Notes under the pieces: generated by a model
What the model was told of the DNA's origin: nothing
What the model saw: only the letters and a program-made list of their open reading frames with translations
The model's database searches: none
Sequence record: OR413585.1
DNA: 64,000 nt
Strand: one strand, 5' to 3'
Translations under genes and position numbers: made by a program
Shown: positions 619-58,981 of the stretch, piece by piece
Position numbering within the stretch: the first letter of the stretch is position 1
Layout: every line of letters starts with the position of its first letter

Positions 619-643
619 CTCAGATATATATTACCTAGGTGAG
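619..643 (+). promoter_or_regulatory. phage early-type promoter motif
   Basis: CTCAGATATATATTACCTAGGTGAG contains TATATTAC (phiKZ early promoter consensus); near-identical copy at 58030-58054. Confidence 0.7.
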
Positions 644-664
644 AGTTAAGAGATTAACTCAACT

Positions 665-693
665 GGCTACCCTCGGGTAGCCTATTCTTTTTT
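665..693 (+). terminator. intrinsic terminator-like hairpin
   Basis: GGCTACCC-TC-GGGTAGCC followed by TATTCTTTTTT. Confidence 0.65.
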
Positions 694-718
694 AAACCAA
701 TCGACTATAGAGTAAAAC

Positions 719-2428: not shown

Positions 2429-2438
2429 CCGAAAAGTT

Positions 2439-2462
2439 TTCAGACAGATGTTATAACGTGAG
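2439..2462 (+). promoter_or_regulatory. phage promoter motif variant
   Basis: TTCAGACAGATGTTATAACGTGAG resembles the 619 and 26032 copies; intergenic. Confidence 0.5.
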
Positions 2463-2557
2463 ATGACGACCCATCTCACTTTGGCCCTGCGGTGATTTCC
2501 CCAACACTTAGCCGCAGGGTCCTTTTTAATCGACTATTACTCGTAAGGATTAAGCAA

Positions 2558-3058
2558 ATGAACATGAACATTCTCGACGATACCCGTTCTTCTTTCTTTA
2601 CTCAGATGAACGTCAATCCCGAACGTACCCGTGCCATTCTTTCCACTGGCTGGAAGTTAAAGCTGTTAGGCGAGTTAACCCTAAACCGCACCGACTGGCC
2701 AGAAGAAGCGACCGTATTGATTAACAGCATTCACAGCGAGTGGCTAGATGCTGCGTTGAATGCCCCACAACTACGTCCGTACTATCGGATGCTTCATGCG
2801 GGTTATGAAGTATACCGCAAAGGTTGGTACGCTGCAGCCACTTATTGCAAAACCCCTGAAGGTCGTGAAGACAACACTGTCGACCACGTATTAGTAAACA
2901 ATTTCTGGGGCGACCAAATCGAAGTCTTACAACTTTCCACCGGTGACCGTATTCCGGCCTGTGAGTTATTCGAAACTAATGCACAAATGTACGAACCATA
3001 TGCAATGATTCGTGGCCGTAAGGTCCCAATCATTTCCCTTATGCATATGGGGCTGTAA
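2558..3058 (+). CDS. hypothetical protein
   Basis: ATG 2558 with SD AAGGA is more plausible than track start 2492, which lies inside a hairpin. Confidence 0.7.
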   Translation: MNMNILDDTRSSFFTQMNVNPERTRAILSTGWKLKLLGELTLNRTDWPEEATVLINSIHSEWLDAALNAPQLRPYYRMLHAGYEVYRKGWYAAATYCKTPEGREDNTVDHVLVNNFWGDQIEVLQLSTGDRIPACELFETNAQMYEPYAMIRGRKVPIISLMHMGL

Positions 3059-3065
3059 ATACGAG

Positions 3066-3094
3066 AGGTAGCCTACGGGCTACCTTCTTTTTTT
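3066..3094 (+). terminator. intrinsic terminator
   Basis: AGGTAGCC-TACG-GGCTACCT plus T-tract. Confidence 0.8.
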
Positions 3095-3112
3095 GTTGAA
3101 GAAGGATTAAAC

Positions 3113-3750: not shown

Positions 3751-3782
3751 GGAACCCTTCGGGGTTCCATTTCTTCTTTTTT
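3751..3782 (+). terminator. intrinsic terminator
   Basis: GGAACCC-TTCG-GGGTTCC plus T-rich tail. Confidence 0.75.
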
Positions 3783-3835
3783 ACGCATGACCTTTTGGAT
3801 ATGAACGACTAATACTTTCTCATTAGAAGGCAAAC

Positions 3836-6346
3836 ATGCTCAAGGTCGAACGTATCATTTTGAAAGGATTTACCGGCATGGGGTTACATGAAATCGAAAC
3901 GTTTGATTTCACCCTTAAGTCAACCGTTACCATCATCCTCGGTGGCAACGGCTGCGGTAAAACAAGCCTCCTATCTGTTTTTCTCCCCTTAGCTCCAGCA
4001 AAATCTGAATTCCGTGAAGGTGGTTCTTACACTAACTACGCGTTAGTCGGGGACGACCGTCTTAAGTTTGAAGTCCTGCGACGTGGGTCTTCTTTGTCTT
4101 GTAGTATTTTCAATATCACTAAAGGTGTCTCCATCGTAGACTCGGTAAACGCCAAAGTTTACAACTCCATGGTGGAGCAATTAACCGGAATCACCAAAGA
4201 AATCAAAGAGTTAATTAATGGTGAGACCTTATTAACTGACGCCACTACCGAAGTTCGTCGTAAATGGTTTACGTTAATGTCAGAATCTGATCTGACGTAC
4301 GTTGTTGGTTGCTATCGACGTTTGCGTAAACTCGCTTCCAGTTTAAGTGGGGCCATTGAGCACACCGGCCGTAAAATCGGTGAGGCAAAAATGCGCGTGG
4401 TGGACGATGAAGAAGATCGTGCACGTTTAGAAGTTCGTTTGAAAGAACTCGATGCTGAGCTTCAGGAATTAAACCGCACAATTGAAGCGAGACCCGGTTT
4501 AGATAACGCCGTTTCGGTTGATAGTATCCGGAAACGCATTGCTTCGTTGCAACCGGCTGTAAAACTCATTATGGAACGTTATGGCGTTCTGCCTTCTGAC
4601 GAACTGATTAACGAGTTTCAAAGTCGTGTGGTTGCCTGGCGTGAGCAAGCTGCCTCTGCTGAAACTGAATGCAACATGTACAATAAAGAGTTGTCACAGC
4701 TACTGGATGAGGAGTCGCGTCAAGCGTATCTGATGCGCAACCATACCGGTCTAAAACAAACAATCGACAGCTTAAAACAGGAACTGGCAACGTTCCAACA
4801 GAACTGGATGTTCCCGGCTCTGTTTGAAGGTACCCGCATTGATGTGGATAGCATTCAGAACGCGTTAAACGATGCCTGTAACTGGAATTTACCGTTGTCC
4901 ATGCATTTGGACCAGTTAAAGACAACAGATCGCCTGGGAGCGTTAGAGAAGCGTTTACAGGGTATGGATTTAACCTCTGCGGGTCTATCTGAAAAGCTGC
5001 AACGTTGTGAGAATGTGCTACACGGTTTATACCACGACCGTCAACACTTCTTAGAAACTGCAGAAGTTGATTGTCCACAGTGTAACCACCGTTTCCGTCC
5101 TGGGATTCGTAAGTCGTTACCTGAAATTGAAAAGGCCATCAACGATAATGAAGGTTGGAAGAAGCAGCTGAAAGACGAAATGGATAGTCTTTTGCGTGAC
5201 CGCAAAGAGATTGAAGAGGACGTCCGTAGCTTACGTACGATTCGCGAAATTGTCATGTCGTATTCCAATCATCCCGTTGTCGGTTTGTTTTTCCGTAAAC
5301 TGCAGGAGCTGGATATCTTCACCACGTCGCGGGATCGTTATGGTGCCATTGCACGTGCCTTTACCGAAGAGCTAGATTCGGCCATGATGTATCTGCGTCA
5401 ATCGGCGAAGCTTGCAACAGCGGAACGGGAATGGCAAGAGGCTGTTGCCGCAGTAGGTAATGTTGATGGTGCGCTGAGTCAGAAAATTGAACACATCCGT
5501 TCACAACTAGACGGGGCTAACCGTCGACTGATAGAATACCGCAGACAAGCCAATGAGCTGGAACGCGAAACCACCCAACTGCAACAAACCAAAGAAGCAA
5601 TCGAACGTTTCCAAAAAGGCTACGAACATCTGGTATCGGAAATGAACATCTCCGTTAACAACGTCGTGGTTCGCGAGTTGTTAAACCGACGCGAAGCGAA
5701 GCTCGATGCGTACACTTCCGCTCGTGAGCGGTTTCGTCAAATGGAAGGGGCTATTGCACGTTTAGCGGAATTAGAAAAAGAGCAAGCTGAGTTGCTCAAA
5801 GAACACCATCATGCCAGATTGATTATCAATGCCGTCTCACCCGAAAAAGGATTATTGCGTCGTTACTTTTATGCTGCGATTACCCGCATCATGGATTTAA
5901 TGAATCGGTATATCGAAATGGTGTGGGCATATCCGATGCAGGTTATTCCATGCGATCTAACCGACGGGGATTTGGATTATACTTTCCCGGTGCGATTAAA
6001 AGACCATGAAGAACTGGTGCCGGATGTGAAGAAAGGTTCGAAGGCACAGCGTATTATCTTTAACATGATGTTTCGTTTAACGGCGTATAAAGCGCTTGGT
6101 TTACAAAACTATCCTTTGTTATTGGATGAACCCTCTGAAGGCATGGATGAAGAACACAAAAATCGACTGGTCAACTTCATTAAATCGTTGGCGTTGTCGG
6201 GAGAGTTTTCTCAATTGCTGGTCGTTTCGCATGAAGCGGAAGTTCATTCTAAACTTAACGAAGCCACCTACTGTGTCGTAGAACCAGAAGGTGTAACGCT
6301 TCCACCGGTGTATAACGAAGGGGTAATAATCAAATATGCATCATAA
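3836..6346 (+). CDS. sbcC: SbcC/Rad50-like SMC ATPase
   Basis: Walker A GGNGCGKTS, long coiled coils, CPQC zinc hook, Walker B LLLDEP, H-loop VVSHE. Confidence 0.9.
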   Translation: MLKVERIILKGFTGMGLHEIETFDFTLKSTVTIILGGNGCGKTSLLSVFLPLAPAKSEFREGGSYTNYALVGDDRLKFEVLRRGSSLSCSIFNITKGVSIVDSVNAKVYNSMVEQLTGITKEIKELINGETLLTDATTEVRRKWFTLMSESDLTYVVGCYRRLRKLASSLSGAIEHTGRKIGEAKMRVVDDEEDRARLEVRLKELDAELQELNRTIEARPGLDNAVSVDSIRKRIASLQPAVKLIMERYGVLPSDELINEFQSRVVAWREQAASAETECNMYNKELSQLLDEESRQAYLMRNHTGLKQTIDSLKQELATFQQNWMFPALFEGTRIDVDSIQNALNDACNWNLPLSMHLDQLKTTDRLGALEKRLQGMDLTSAGLSEKLQRCENVLHGLYHDRQHFLETAEVDCPQCNHRFRPGIRKSLPEIEKAINDNEGWKKQLKDEMDSLLRDRKEIEEDVRSLRTIREIVMSYSNHPVVGLFFRKLQELDIFTTSRDRYGAIARAFTEELDSAMMYLRQSAKLATAEREWQEAVAAVGNVDGALSQKIEHIRSQLDGANRRLIEYRRQANELERETTQLQQTKEAIERFQKGYEHLVSEMNISVNNVVVRELLNRREAKLDAYTSARERFRQMEGAIARLAELEKEQAELLKEHHHARLIINAVSPEKGLLRRYFYAAITRIMDLMNRYIEMVWAYPMQVIPCDLTDGDLDYTFPVRLKDHEELVPDVKKGSKAQRIIFNMMFRLTAYKALGLQNYPLLLDEPSEGMDEEHKNRLVNFIKSLALSGEFSQLLVVSHEAEVHSKLNEATYCVVEPEGVTLPPVYNEGVIIKYAS

Positions 6347-57056: not shown

Positions 57057-57356
57057 ATGAAGGTCGTTAACATCGCAATACCTCCGACCCTTCGTTGTTT
57101 GACGCCGGAAGAACTGAAAGCGTTAGCGATCTACGCCATCCAAGGAAAGGCTGGTAAGGAAGTGCTTGCCGAAATCTTATCGGAACGATTTGATACAAAA
57201 CGCAAGGTTAATAACATTATCTCCGGAATCGCGTCGCTAGATATCATGGCGCTCTATTGCGACATTAAAGAGGCCGGAGTGACAATCGACTATCGCCGTA
57301 CTTACTTTCTACTCACTGAGCCGTATCGTTCGAATATGGCAATAAAGCAGATGTAA
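57057..57356 (+). CDS. hypothetical protein
   Basis: ATG 57057 with SD AGGGGGA. Confidence 0.6.
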   Translation: MKVVNIAIPPTLRCLTPEELKALAIYAIQGKAGKEVLAEILSERFDTKRKVNNIISGIASLDIMALYCDIKEAGVTIDYRRTYFLLTEPYRSNMAIKQM

Positions 57357-57364
57357 TTTTTTAC

Positions 57365-57958
57365 ATGACGTTGGTTTCATGTGTTGGGGAACAAAATAAG
57401 GACAAGAAAATGTTTTATCTGGATAGCGATGGCGTTTTTGCACGCTGGCGTAAATACGTTTTATCCACACATTTTCCCGGAATGACGATTAAAGAGTTTA
57501 ACGCATTACCTGAACTCCGTCGTCGTAGTTTGGTTCGTTCGATGTATCAGAACGATCCTGACTTGTTTTACAAACTCGAACCAATTGAGGGTGTAGAGCG
57601 AATCCTGGAAACGGTAGATAGACTTTGCGACAGTTGGGCAATACTCACCTCTGGGTCAGAAGATCACTACGACCACCAATTGGTTGTGGATTCAAAACAA
57701 CGGTGGTTCATGAAGCACTTTGGGGTACCAGCTGACAAAGTCATCGTCACCGAAAGTTCAGGGCAGAAGAAAGCTTACGCCTCGCGAGGTAATTTGCTTG
57801 TCGACGATTATGGTCGTAACTGTCGAGAATGGATTTTGCAAGGTGGCGCGGCGATATGGTCGCGAACTGAAGAACCGAACATTGATGGCATTTGCCTCCA
57901 GTGTGAAGCGTTCTACAATGACCCGATTACTTACTCGGGGACACTACTGCAAGTCTAA
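57365..57958 (+). CDS. HAD-family 5'(3')-deoxyribonucleotidase-like phosphatase
   Basis: YLDSDGVF (motif I), ILTS (II), KK (III), LLVDDY (IV). Confidence 0.8.
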   Translation: MTLVSCVGEQNKDKKMFYLDSDGVFARWRKYVLSTHFPGMTIKEFNALPELRRRSLVRSMYQNDPDLFYKLEPIEGVERILETVDRLCDSWAILTSGSEDHYDHQLVVDSKQRWFMKHFGVPADKVIVTESSGQKKAYASRGNLLVDDYGRNCREWILQGGAAIWSRTEEPNIDGICLQCEAFYNDPITYSGTLLQV

Positions 57959-58020: not shown

Positions 58021-58054
58021 CAAAAAGAACTGAGATATATATTACTTAGGTGAG
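58021..58054 (+). promoter_or_regulatory. phage early-type promoter
   Basis: CAAAAAGAACTGAGATATATATTACTTAGGTGAG with TATATTAC, immediately after a terminator. Confidence 0.75.
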
Positions 58055-58104
58055 CGTTACACGTTAACGCTTTAATCGACTATTACCCAGAAGGAGTATT
58101 TACA

Positions 58105-58503
58105 ATGACTAACCAACTACGCCAAGACCCGTTTGTTGCCATGATGCTTTGTGCTAAAGCCGAGAGCAACGAAGCCGATTTAATTCGTCTGTTGACTGAT
58201 GACGAATACCTTATCTCCGAGCGCGATAAACGTTTAAAAGAACTCTACAAGCCAGAAACCGGTGAATCGCTCGGTAATCAAAACGCCTGGAAATTTCTTA
58301 TTCTCGTAGCTGATGAAAAATGGCGAGCAGAAAATCCCATCGTCTGCGATATTACAGACTTACCGTACAAATACGGCGGACTCATCACTAGCGACCTGCA
58401 TCTTAAAGCGTTCTTTACTGGTGAAGCAATTCAAGAACTGCAAGATGTTCTTGTTACAGCAACAAACACTTTGAGACGTTTGCGCGCTGAGCAGCTAATC
58501 TGA
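58105..58503 (+). CDS. hypothetical early protein, paralog pair B
   Basis: SD AAGGAG; DPF....LC..KRLKE N-terminus shared with the next ORF. Confidence 0.75.
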   Translation: MTNQLRQDPFVAMMLCAKAESNEADLIRLLTDDEYLISERDKRLKELYKPETGESLGNQNAWKFLILVADEKWRAENPIVCDITDLPYKYGGLITSDLHLKAFFTGEAIQELQDVLVTATNTLRRLRAEQLI

Positions 58504-58947: not shown

Positions 58948-58981
58948 TAGTTAATCGACCATTATCGTAAGGAATATTTAC

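Follow-up and report, generated by a model that had tools for sequence, protein, structure and literature searches.

The question raised by this locus is what a spacer combining promoter-like and hairpin-forming sequence does between two gene clusters of a jumbo phage. The 64,000-nt stretch analyzed here (one strand of sequence record OR413585.1, hereafter the window, with record position 175100 as window position 1) is identical to Salmonella phage SPLA5c, an SPN3US-like jumbo phage of the genus Seoulvirus. The spacer separates a cluster of four small genes (719-2428) from a gene for a 166-aa protein (2558-3058), all five belonging to PHROG families whose function is unknown, and window positions 2429-2560 most likely form the control region between two early gene clusters. 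An earlier reading of this DNA (the original prediction) had described the region as the second of three copies of a structured 5' leader of early messages; we refer to them as copies 1, 2, and 3. We lean toward the view that copy 2 is a promoter-proximal terminator, or attenuator, which also punctuates the upstream operon and yields an RNA of ~70 nt. The element on which this view centers is a hairpin, termed stem 2, that is kept in three phage genera.

All of the features that had been listed for copy 2 were found, and its folds were far better than those of shuffled sequence. From 5' to 3', the region comprises:

2429-2454, plus strand: early promoter motif of the virion RNA polymerase type, consisting of an A/T-rich upstream part GAAAAGTTTT and the core CAGACAGATGTTAT (2441-2454)
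2458-2479, plus strand: hairpin 1, GTGAGATG/ACGACC/CATCTCAC, an 8-bp stem closed by the loop ACGACC, at the transcript's predicted 5' end
2483-2521, plus strand: stem 2, GGCCCTGCGG(T)/(G)CCGCAGGGTC, with 2483-2493 paired to 2511-2521 around the loop 2494-2510
2497-2507, plus strand: C-rich block of this loop, TTCCCCAACAC, a candidate seed, with U(U)UCCC in every orthologue
2522-2527, plus strand: C and U5 tract directly after stem 2, with CCTTTTT invariant in 13 of 13 orthologues
2528-2540, plus strand: exact copy of the early-gene box, AATCGACTATTAC, an element of the translation start regions of early genes
2546-2560, plus strand: Shine-Dalgarno sequence AAGGA (2546-2550) and ATG (2558), the start of the 166-aa protein
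2558-3058, plus strand: gene of the 166-aa protein, PHROG 8115, function unknown

The 106-nt leader of copy 2 folds as a whole with a z-score of -5.7. Hairpin 1 (-10.5 kcal/mol, z-score -5.0) and stem 2 (-21 kcal/mol, z-score -4.0) were each matched by 0 of 200 shuffles. Stem 2, which had been given as 10 bp, is indeed present but has 11 bp when a U.G pair is counted, 8 of them G-C, and encloses a loop of 17 nt. A third helix, in which the box pairs with the ribosome site, was predicted for SPLA5c and by inspection was not kept in relatives. An N-terminal extension of the 166-aa protein from GTG 2492, in frame with the gene at 2558, was also rejected as not conserved, STsAS and pEa_SNUABM_29 having an in-frame TAA directly before the ATG. 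Rfam covariance models gave no match at gathering score over the whole window and none at E-values up to 10 for 2380-2620.

Comparison with related phages placed the copy-2 element at the same syntenic position in SPN3US and two metagenome contigs, STsAS, SPAsTU, pEa_SNUABM_29, phiEaH2, Stratton, Asesino, and seven Machinavirus genomes. Among 13 distinct sequences of stem 2 from three genera (Seoulvirus, Erskinevirus, and Machinavirus), 97.9% of cells were paired and 6 of the 11 pairs change on both sides (27 cells). None of 500 shuffles was as good, and slid controls paired in 34-52% of cells. Sequence itself was conserved in three places: the loop of hairpin 1 (ACGAC), the loop of stem 2 (U(U)UCCC(C)AAC), and the tail GGTCCTTTTT. 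Judged by this sequence comparison, stem 2 is an old, syntenic, single-copy orthologous hairpin of the terminator type and not a repeat. The description of the locus as a second copy of the same leader thus holds for the leader architecture, while stem 2 has an orthologous, syntenic history of its own in the three genera. Pattern scans of IMG/VR and metagenome contigs returned only SPN3US-like or Asesino-like contigs and chance matches, and protein-based locus searches for further lineages added nothing new.

With a GC-rich stem standing directly before a U-tract, stem 2 and the C-U5 run have the makeup of an intrinsic terminator. There are 41 terminator-like hairpins on the plus strand, 24 of them with loops of 3-5 nt, and stem 2 is the strongest of those with large loops.

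Hairpin 1 is kept in Seoulvirus and Erskinevirus, where its orthologues (four distinct sequences) were paired in 96.9% of cells, with 2 of 8 pairs compensatory and 16 of 500 shuffles as good, a statistic of limited power. Its loop ACGAC is invariant among these orthologues. Covariation among relatives, which had been named as the check on selection for RNA structure, was therefore found in both stems of copy 2. In 25 early leaders, the 5' arm of the hairpin begins at positions 1-5 of a GTGAG block, mostly at position 3, and the register of hairpin 1 agrees with that of the hairpins of the 24 other leaders. The apical pairs of these hairpins vary with pairing kept, as had been claimed when their stem sequences were said to differ; the GAGA/UCUY base, in contrast, is conserved in all family members. 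Pairs in the paralogous hairpins were counted by script, MAFFT having left the 3' arms out of register. Two other early leaders carry, between the 5' hairpin and the ribosome site, the unpaired, C-rich motif TTCCCCCAAC, which resembles the stem 2 loop: one in the SPLA5c record (L002:16497-16590) and one at position 223774 of the phiEaH2 record (3774-3860 of its piece). The motif of the former is not kept in the pEa_SNUABM_29 orthologue.

The sequence upstream of hairpin 1 falls within a family of early promoters with the consensus core CAGATAKATATTAY. At up to 1 mismatch, this core was found on the forward strand only, 19 times in SPLA5c and 14-20 times in each of phiEaH2, Asesino, ChrisDB, Parshik, and pEa_SNUABM_29, with 0 reverse sites in every case; it is thus strand-specific in six genomes, with 0-1 sites for the control. 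A position weight matrix (PWM) made from 70 sites recovered 23 SPLA5c sites at 27-51 bits with a clear gap below them, and a score of 25 bits or more is reached by ~23 sites per genome. Published work on phiKZ-like phages places such motifs at about -10 from mapped early starts. Family members that have no hairpin have their ATG ~32-36 nt past the core, and we therefore place the start just after the core, at the GTGAG block. The family divides into two subclasses. TTAC cores, TATATATTAC, are followed by TAGGTGAG, a hairpin, and the box, while TTAT cores, GATATTATCT, are mostly without hairpin and box. In four genomes, a hairpin of at least -6 kcal/mol in strength lies just downstream of 82% of 22 TTAC sites versus 7% of shuffles, a result that bears out the proposed class of structured early leaders; at the same threshold, the TTAT values are 23% of 48 sites versus 14% of shuffles. 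The two subclasses may reflect different strength or timing.

Copy 2 lies on the strand of this family and ahead of a gene cluster, and its core differs from the consensus at 2 positions, each change being found singly in good promoters. The core and upstream part alone score 28.3 bits. Orthologues with normal spacing score 37.5 bits (pEa_SNUABM_29) and 32.8 bits (STsAS), which is in the range of full promoters, and across Seoulvirus, the only genus in which the promoter motif was found at the copy-2 element, the promoter-like stretch shows higher conservation than the genes on either side. No sigma-70-like site was found at copy 2. From its sequence, we take copy 2 to belong to the early-promoter family as a real member, though in weakened form. 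The designation "promoter variant" agrees with this reading, with the qualification that the site is weakened here (7 bits, compared with at least 27 for the 23 clear sites).

Put together, these elements suggest the following course of events. The virion RNA polymerase would start at the weakened early promoter, at ~2458, and the nascent transcript would open with the GAGA/UCUC hairpin of the family (hairpin 1) at its predicted 5' end. Some 25 nt later, stem 2 and the U5 tract would be met and may act as an attenuator of the intrinsic-terminator type. The outcome would be a ~70-nt RNA (2458-2527) together with a reduced amount of read-through message for the next gene, and stem 2 would also stop or damp transcription coming from the strong promoter at 621. 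The predicted RNA has a predicted fold of -32.7 kcal/mol, and its putative start and the end of the U-tract at 2527 lie less than 250 nt apart and upstream of the ATG at 2558, a layout that fits a short RNA. Of the three functions that had been proposed (5'-end protection, attenuation, and a signal for export), attenuation fits best because stem 2 and its U-tract are a terminator-type element downstream of a promoter.

RNA sequencing depth was taken as the depth of assembled contigs in three runs (X11, X12, and X14) of one study:

Bin 2201-2400: X11 ~104,000; X12 ~102,000; X14 ~101,000
Bin 2401-2600: X11 18,500; X12 20,800; X14 62,800
Beyond the terminator at 3065-3086: X11 ~3,000; X12 ~2,800; X14 ~2,000

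Contig depth rises after the copy 1 promoter and goes down 1.6- to 5.6-fold from bin 2201-2400 to bin 2401-2600, which is weak evidence. The pattern agrees with partial termination at stem 2. A tetraloop terminator further downstream, GAGGTAGCC-TACG-GGCTACCTT with its T-run (3065-3096), coincides with a drop in contig depth of more than 10-fold in all three runs and has a conserved counterpart in Erskinevirus, where the loop is UUCG or UACG.

Several observations weigh against a promoter-proximal attenuator. Contig depth is a poor measure and shows no transcript starts or ends. The full PWM score of copy 2 is 7.0 bits, which ranks it 24th on the plus strand, and two reverse-strand sites outscore it; the score is low because a 1-nt deletion between the core and GTGAG shifts the downstream block out of register. 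The loop of stem 2, 17 nt here and 17-25 nt in orthologues, falls outside the usual 3-8 nt, and a consensus terminator scan, which covered loops of 3-8 nt only, did not call the hairpin. Finally, both hairpins persist in Erskinevirus, where the sequence ahead of them is unrelated and has no promoter motif, and Machinavirus keeps stem 2 alone, again with no promoter motif. The element therefore has a function independent of local initiation, and pure 5'-end protection, for the same reason, does not suffice as its whole function.

The conserved loop of stem 2 was compared with the whole SPLA5c genome (~80,000 windows), and its best duplex, with 11 Watson-Crick pairs and -20 kcal/mol, was with a site in the 5'UTR (5' untranslated region) of a gene for a 182-aa NT5C-like nucleotidase (Pfam PF06941, E-value 3e-8):

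57381-57391, plus strand: candidate target GTGTTGGGGAA, at -29 to -19 of ATG 57410 and 6 nt upstream of AAGGA

Only 2 of 2000 shuffled loops matched the observed energy on this 5'UTR. The seed (2497-2507) has an unpaired probability of 0.98, and the target site is about half accessible. Within a spacer that otherwise varies, it is the target block that is conserved, and in all tested cases in two genera it pairs with the local loop, with 11 Watson-Crick pairs in SPLA5c, 12 in SPAsTU, 12 in pEa_SNUABM_29, 10 and a G.U pair in phiEaH2, and 11 in a shifted register in Asesino. Parshik, pSal-SNUABM-04, and pEa_SNUABM_6 show a match of 9-10 nt between the opposite half of the loop, GATGTTATCCT, and the nucleotidase gene's ribosome site and spacer, and the three longest loop matches in the entire Parshik genome are all translation start regions. 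Complementarity of 9-12 Watson-Crick nt was thus found in eight phages of three clades, mostly as joint conservation of two motifs. No pairing of the loop with the nucleotidase gene was found in the clade of ChrisDB, Caitlin, pEa_SNUABM_9, and pEa_SNUABM_4.

Other matches of the loop were also followed. The Parshik loop shows complementarity of 11 and 12 nt to the ribosome site and spacer, AGGATAACATC, of two genes lying just upstream in the same early region, gp191 and gp192 (record positions 162427-162450 and 163085-163110). A 12-nt match in ChrisDB was set aside as chance: it falls within the coding sequence of gp230, and pEa_SNUABM_9, pEa_SNUABM_4, and Caitlin do not share it. The other 10-nt matches in SPLA5c, barely above the 2.3 expected by chance, were likewise rejected: they lie far from the leaders and gene starts seen, are not at matching places in pEa_SNUABM_29, and the two that were checked in the annotation are inside genes. 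Directly before the target block, a hairpin ACATGA/TCATGT (57363-57380) has its stem kept in pEa_SNUABM_29 with a different loop and is not evident in Erskinevirus.

These sequence matches make it possible, although we hold this only tentatively, that the phage encodes a conserved base-pairing small RNA (sRNA), either the short RNA itself or an operon's 3' end, whose stem 2 loop would serve as the seed that pairs with the 5'UTR of the phage's own NT5C-like deoxynucleotidase and tunes its translation or stability. The source of such an RNA would be the promoter-proximal terminator in Seoulvirus and an operon 3' end in the sister genera, and in the Parshik clade the loop would have drifted to the ribosome sites of the nucleotidase and neighboring early genes. 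The rank of the nucleotidase 5'UTR as the best duplex in the genome, the rarity of equal shuffled loops, the open seed, and the retention of pairing with the same gene in relatives, through one half of the loop or the other, all favor this idea. An 11-mer match is, on the other hand, expected by chance ~0.5 times on one strand and ~0.03 times within 5'UTRs, and the support for the idea in Seoulvirus and Erskinevirus is mostly joint motif conservation rather than compensatory change. The missing pairing in the ChrisDB clade, where the single 12-mer match is not conserved, and the half-accessible target site also speak against it. A plainer explanation, which we find rather unlikely, is an ordinary intercistronic terminator next to a decayed, silent promoter, with hairpin 1 as a leftover or a general message stabilizer and with neither a short RNA nor regulation. 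The low full promoter score in SPLA5c, the occurrence of stem 2 without promoter in two other genera, and the fall in contig depth across the element would all be accounted for, and terminators separate many gene clusters of SPLA5c. Such a terminator needs no loop of 17-25 nt with a motif invariant in three genera, the other terminators of the phage mostly having tetraloops; nor does a silent promoter sit well with a promoter-like stretch that outconserves its flanking genes in Seoulvirus and reaches full promoter scores in relatives, or with a hairpin 1 maintained through compensatory changes.

Less probable again, and in our judgment quite unlikely, is that the 5' leader hairpins shield early messages from decay that depends on the 5' end or tag them for export from the early infection vesicle or phage nucleus. 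Stem-loops at the 5' terminus stabilize E. coli messages, and the fixed register of the hairpin after TTAC promoters (22 leaders) is what such a role would look like. It leaves stem 2, the U-tract, and the conserved loop unexplained, though, and neither the position of hairpin 1 in the middle of an operon transcript in Erskinevirus, with no promoter, nor the 48 TTAT promoters of the family, mostly without a hairpin, fits with it. A role at the level of DNA, with the cassettes acting as recombination points (as for the PeSL cassettes considered below) or protein binding sites and the RNA folds being incidental, is highly improbable. It would draw on the recurrence of a ~90-bp cassette beside small genes and on the small reading frame that relatives carry and copy 1 of SPLA5c does not (see below), but compensatory changes that keep both stems paired point to selection on a single-stranded fold, and stem 2 is a single-copy orthologue, not a repeat. 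Promoter-proximal attenuation with punctuation of the upstream operon therefore remains the interpretation that we prefer.

The two other copies of the leader have the following parts:

621-708, plus strand: copy 1, with core 621-634, hairpin 643-660, tetraloop terminator 665-682 with a T-run, and box 700-708; ATG at 719
58032-58107, plus strand: copy 3, with core 58032-58045, hairpin 58053-58071, and exact box 58074-58086; ATG at 58105

Copy 1 has a canonical core with the best PWM score of the genome (50.8 bits) and the same order of elements as copy 2, but an ordinary tetraloop terminator. Copy 3 (44.5 bits), proposed at 58030-58107, proved to be real, with promoter core, hairpin, and exact box. 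The ~90-bp cassette of promoter, hairpin, and box occurs 7 times per genome, beside small genes of unknown function. In pEa_SNUABM_29, phiEaH2, Asesino, and Stratton, a reading frame of ~80 aa separates the copy 1 terminator from the box; in SPLA5c (665-718), which is without it, the box follows the terminator directly, a deletion at a repeated cassette that recalls cassette-mediated shuffling. In another early leader, ~3.1 kb before the window at record positions 171951-172080, the promoter precedes a terminator-like hairpin whose stem covaries (AACTGTT, GCGTC, CTGTG) around the loop CTTTAGT, invariant in SPLA5c, pEa_SNUABM_29, and phiEaH2. By its appearance, this would be a second attenuator of the promoter-proximal kind, again with a conserved loop.

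The box has a wider distribution than the promoter. About 12 copies of TCGACYAT lie upstream of ribosome sites, all on the plus strand, in leaders or between early genes, and in canonical leaders TCGACYAT(TA) stands ~27-29 nt before the ATG. The 13-mer box at up to 3 mismatches was not enriched in the window (20 found versus 17.9 expected); the exact and near-exact copies matter because all of them are on the plus strand beside ribosome sites. The box is present in the Erskinevirus orthologues of copy 2 and degenerate beside the ribosome site in Machinavirus. Boxes without a promoter were seen at 58953-58965 (AATCGACCATTAT), between genes with a ribosome site; at 1580-1592 (AATCGACTATTCA), where a coding sequence ends ahead of the next gene; at 57284-57296 (AATCGACTATCGC), inside a coding sequence; and at record position 70767, between early genes. 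The box goes with the translation start regions of early genes, not with promoters, and is a candidate enhancer, operator, or processing site.

How does copy 2 compare with known systems? It resembles intrinsic terminators in its GC-rich 11-bp stem, its U5 tract, and its position between gene clusters, and departs from them in its large loop with an invariant C-rich motif. The ompA message and similar bacterial messages carry stabilizing stem-loops at the 5' terminus, and hairpin 1 shares with these a position a few nucleotides from the predicted 5' end and the presence of compensatory change; in Erskinevirus, by contrast, it is internal to the transcript. Staphylococcus RNAIII and the Rsa-class RNAs have C-rich loop seeds, and sRNAs derived from 3'UTRs share the terminator of the message. 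The stem 2 loop is likewise unpaired and C-rich, sits in a terminator-proximal hairpin, and has its complement in G-rich sequence that lies at or close to a ribosome site, with the differences that the copy-2 pairing is only predicted and that the organism is a lytic jumbo phage.

The closest likeness is with phiKZ and 201phi2-1 (PMC10914365, PMC11512511). In phiKZ, transcript mapping and northern blots showed a start followed by a terminator within the 5'UTR; six phages studied had 42 terminators inside 5'UTRs, phiKZ itself had 17 short-RNA candidates, including a 71-nt species for which more than 90% of transcripts are aborted, and 201phi2-1 had eight short RNAs derived from 5'UTRs (PMC10914365, PMC11512511). 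As predicted for copy 2, a promoter of the phage polymerase is followed within ~50-150 nt by a hairpin/U-tract terminator in the 5'UTR, in units conserved within the genus; the products in those phages are abundant, structured short RNAs alongside the read-through message. Those units come from transcript mapping, whereas copy 2 comes from sequence and comparison alone, with no sequence similarity to them shown; copy 2, moreover, is retained in sister genera that have no promoter there, and a candidate target exists for its conserved loop. The early promoters of phiKZ-like phages are AT-rich, highly conserved motifs of ~10-14 nt, strand-specific, placed before early operons at ~20-35 sites per genome (PMC7598289, PMC8244752), as in the family described here; the copy 2 site is weakened and has a spacer shorter by 1 nt. 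The PeSL cassettes of T4-type phages (PMC2839356, PMC4122927) are repeated intergenic units of ~100 bp with an early promoter, stem-loop, and ribosome site beside small unknown genes. They rely on sigma-70 promoters of the host, and the stem-loop, which ends upstream transcription, is located inside the promoter or ahead of it, while the hairpins described here lie downstream of a phage-type core, within the predicted transcript of the cassette's own promoter. Among the papers searched, none was found on these leaders, or on mapped start sites, in SPN3US-like phages. New here are copy 2's history as an orthologous element, the strong covariation seen in stem 2 across three genera, its unusual conserved loop, and the candidate target.

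In nucleus-forming jumbo phages, the control of early expression is known almost only from Pseudomonas phages, where dozens of short 5'UTR RNAs have been seen, none with a function or target. Copy 2 is an enterobacterial counterpart with strong comparative support, in three genera and with compensatory changes. Its anatomy is clear and mutable in a genetically tractable Salmonella phage, and it comes with a concrete candidate target. The promoter catalogue of SPN3US-like phages is refined at the same time to ~23 sites in two subclasses, with the hairpin and box in only one of them. If the tentative reading of copy 2 as an sRNA source is true, the RNA of this lytic, nucleus-forming jumbo phage would tie early transcription to how nucleotide metabolism is controlled.

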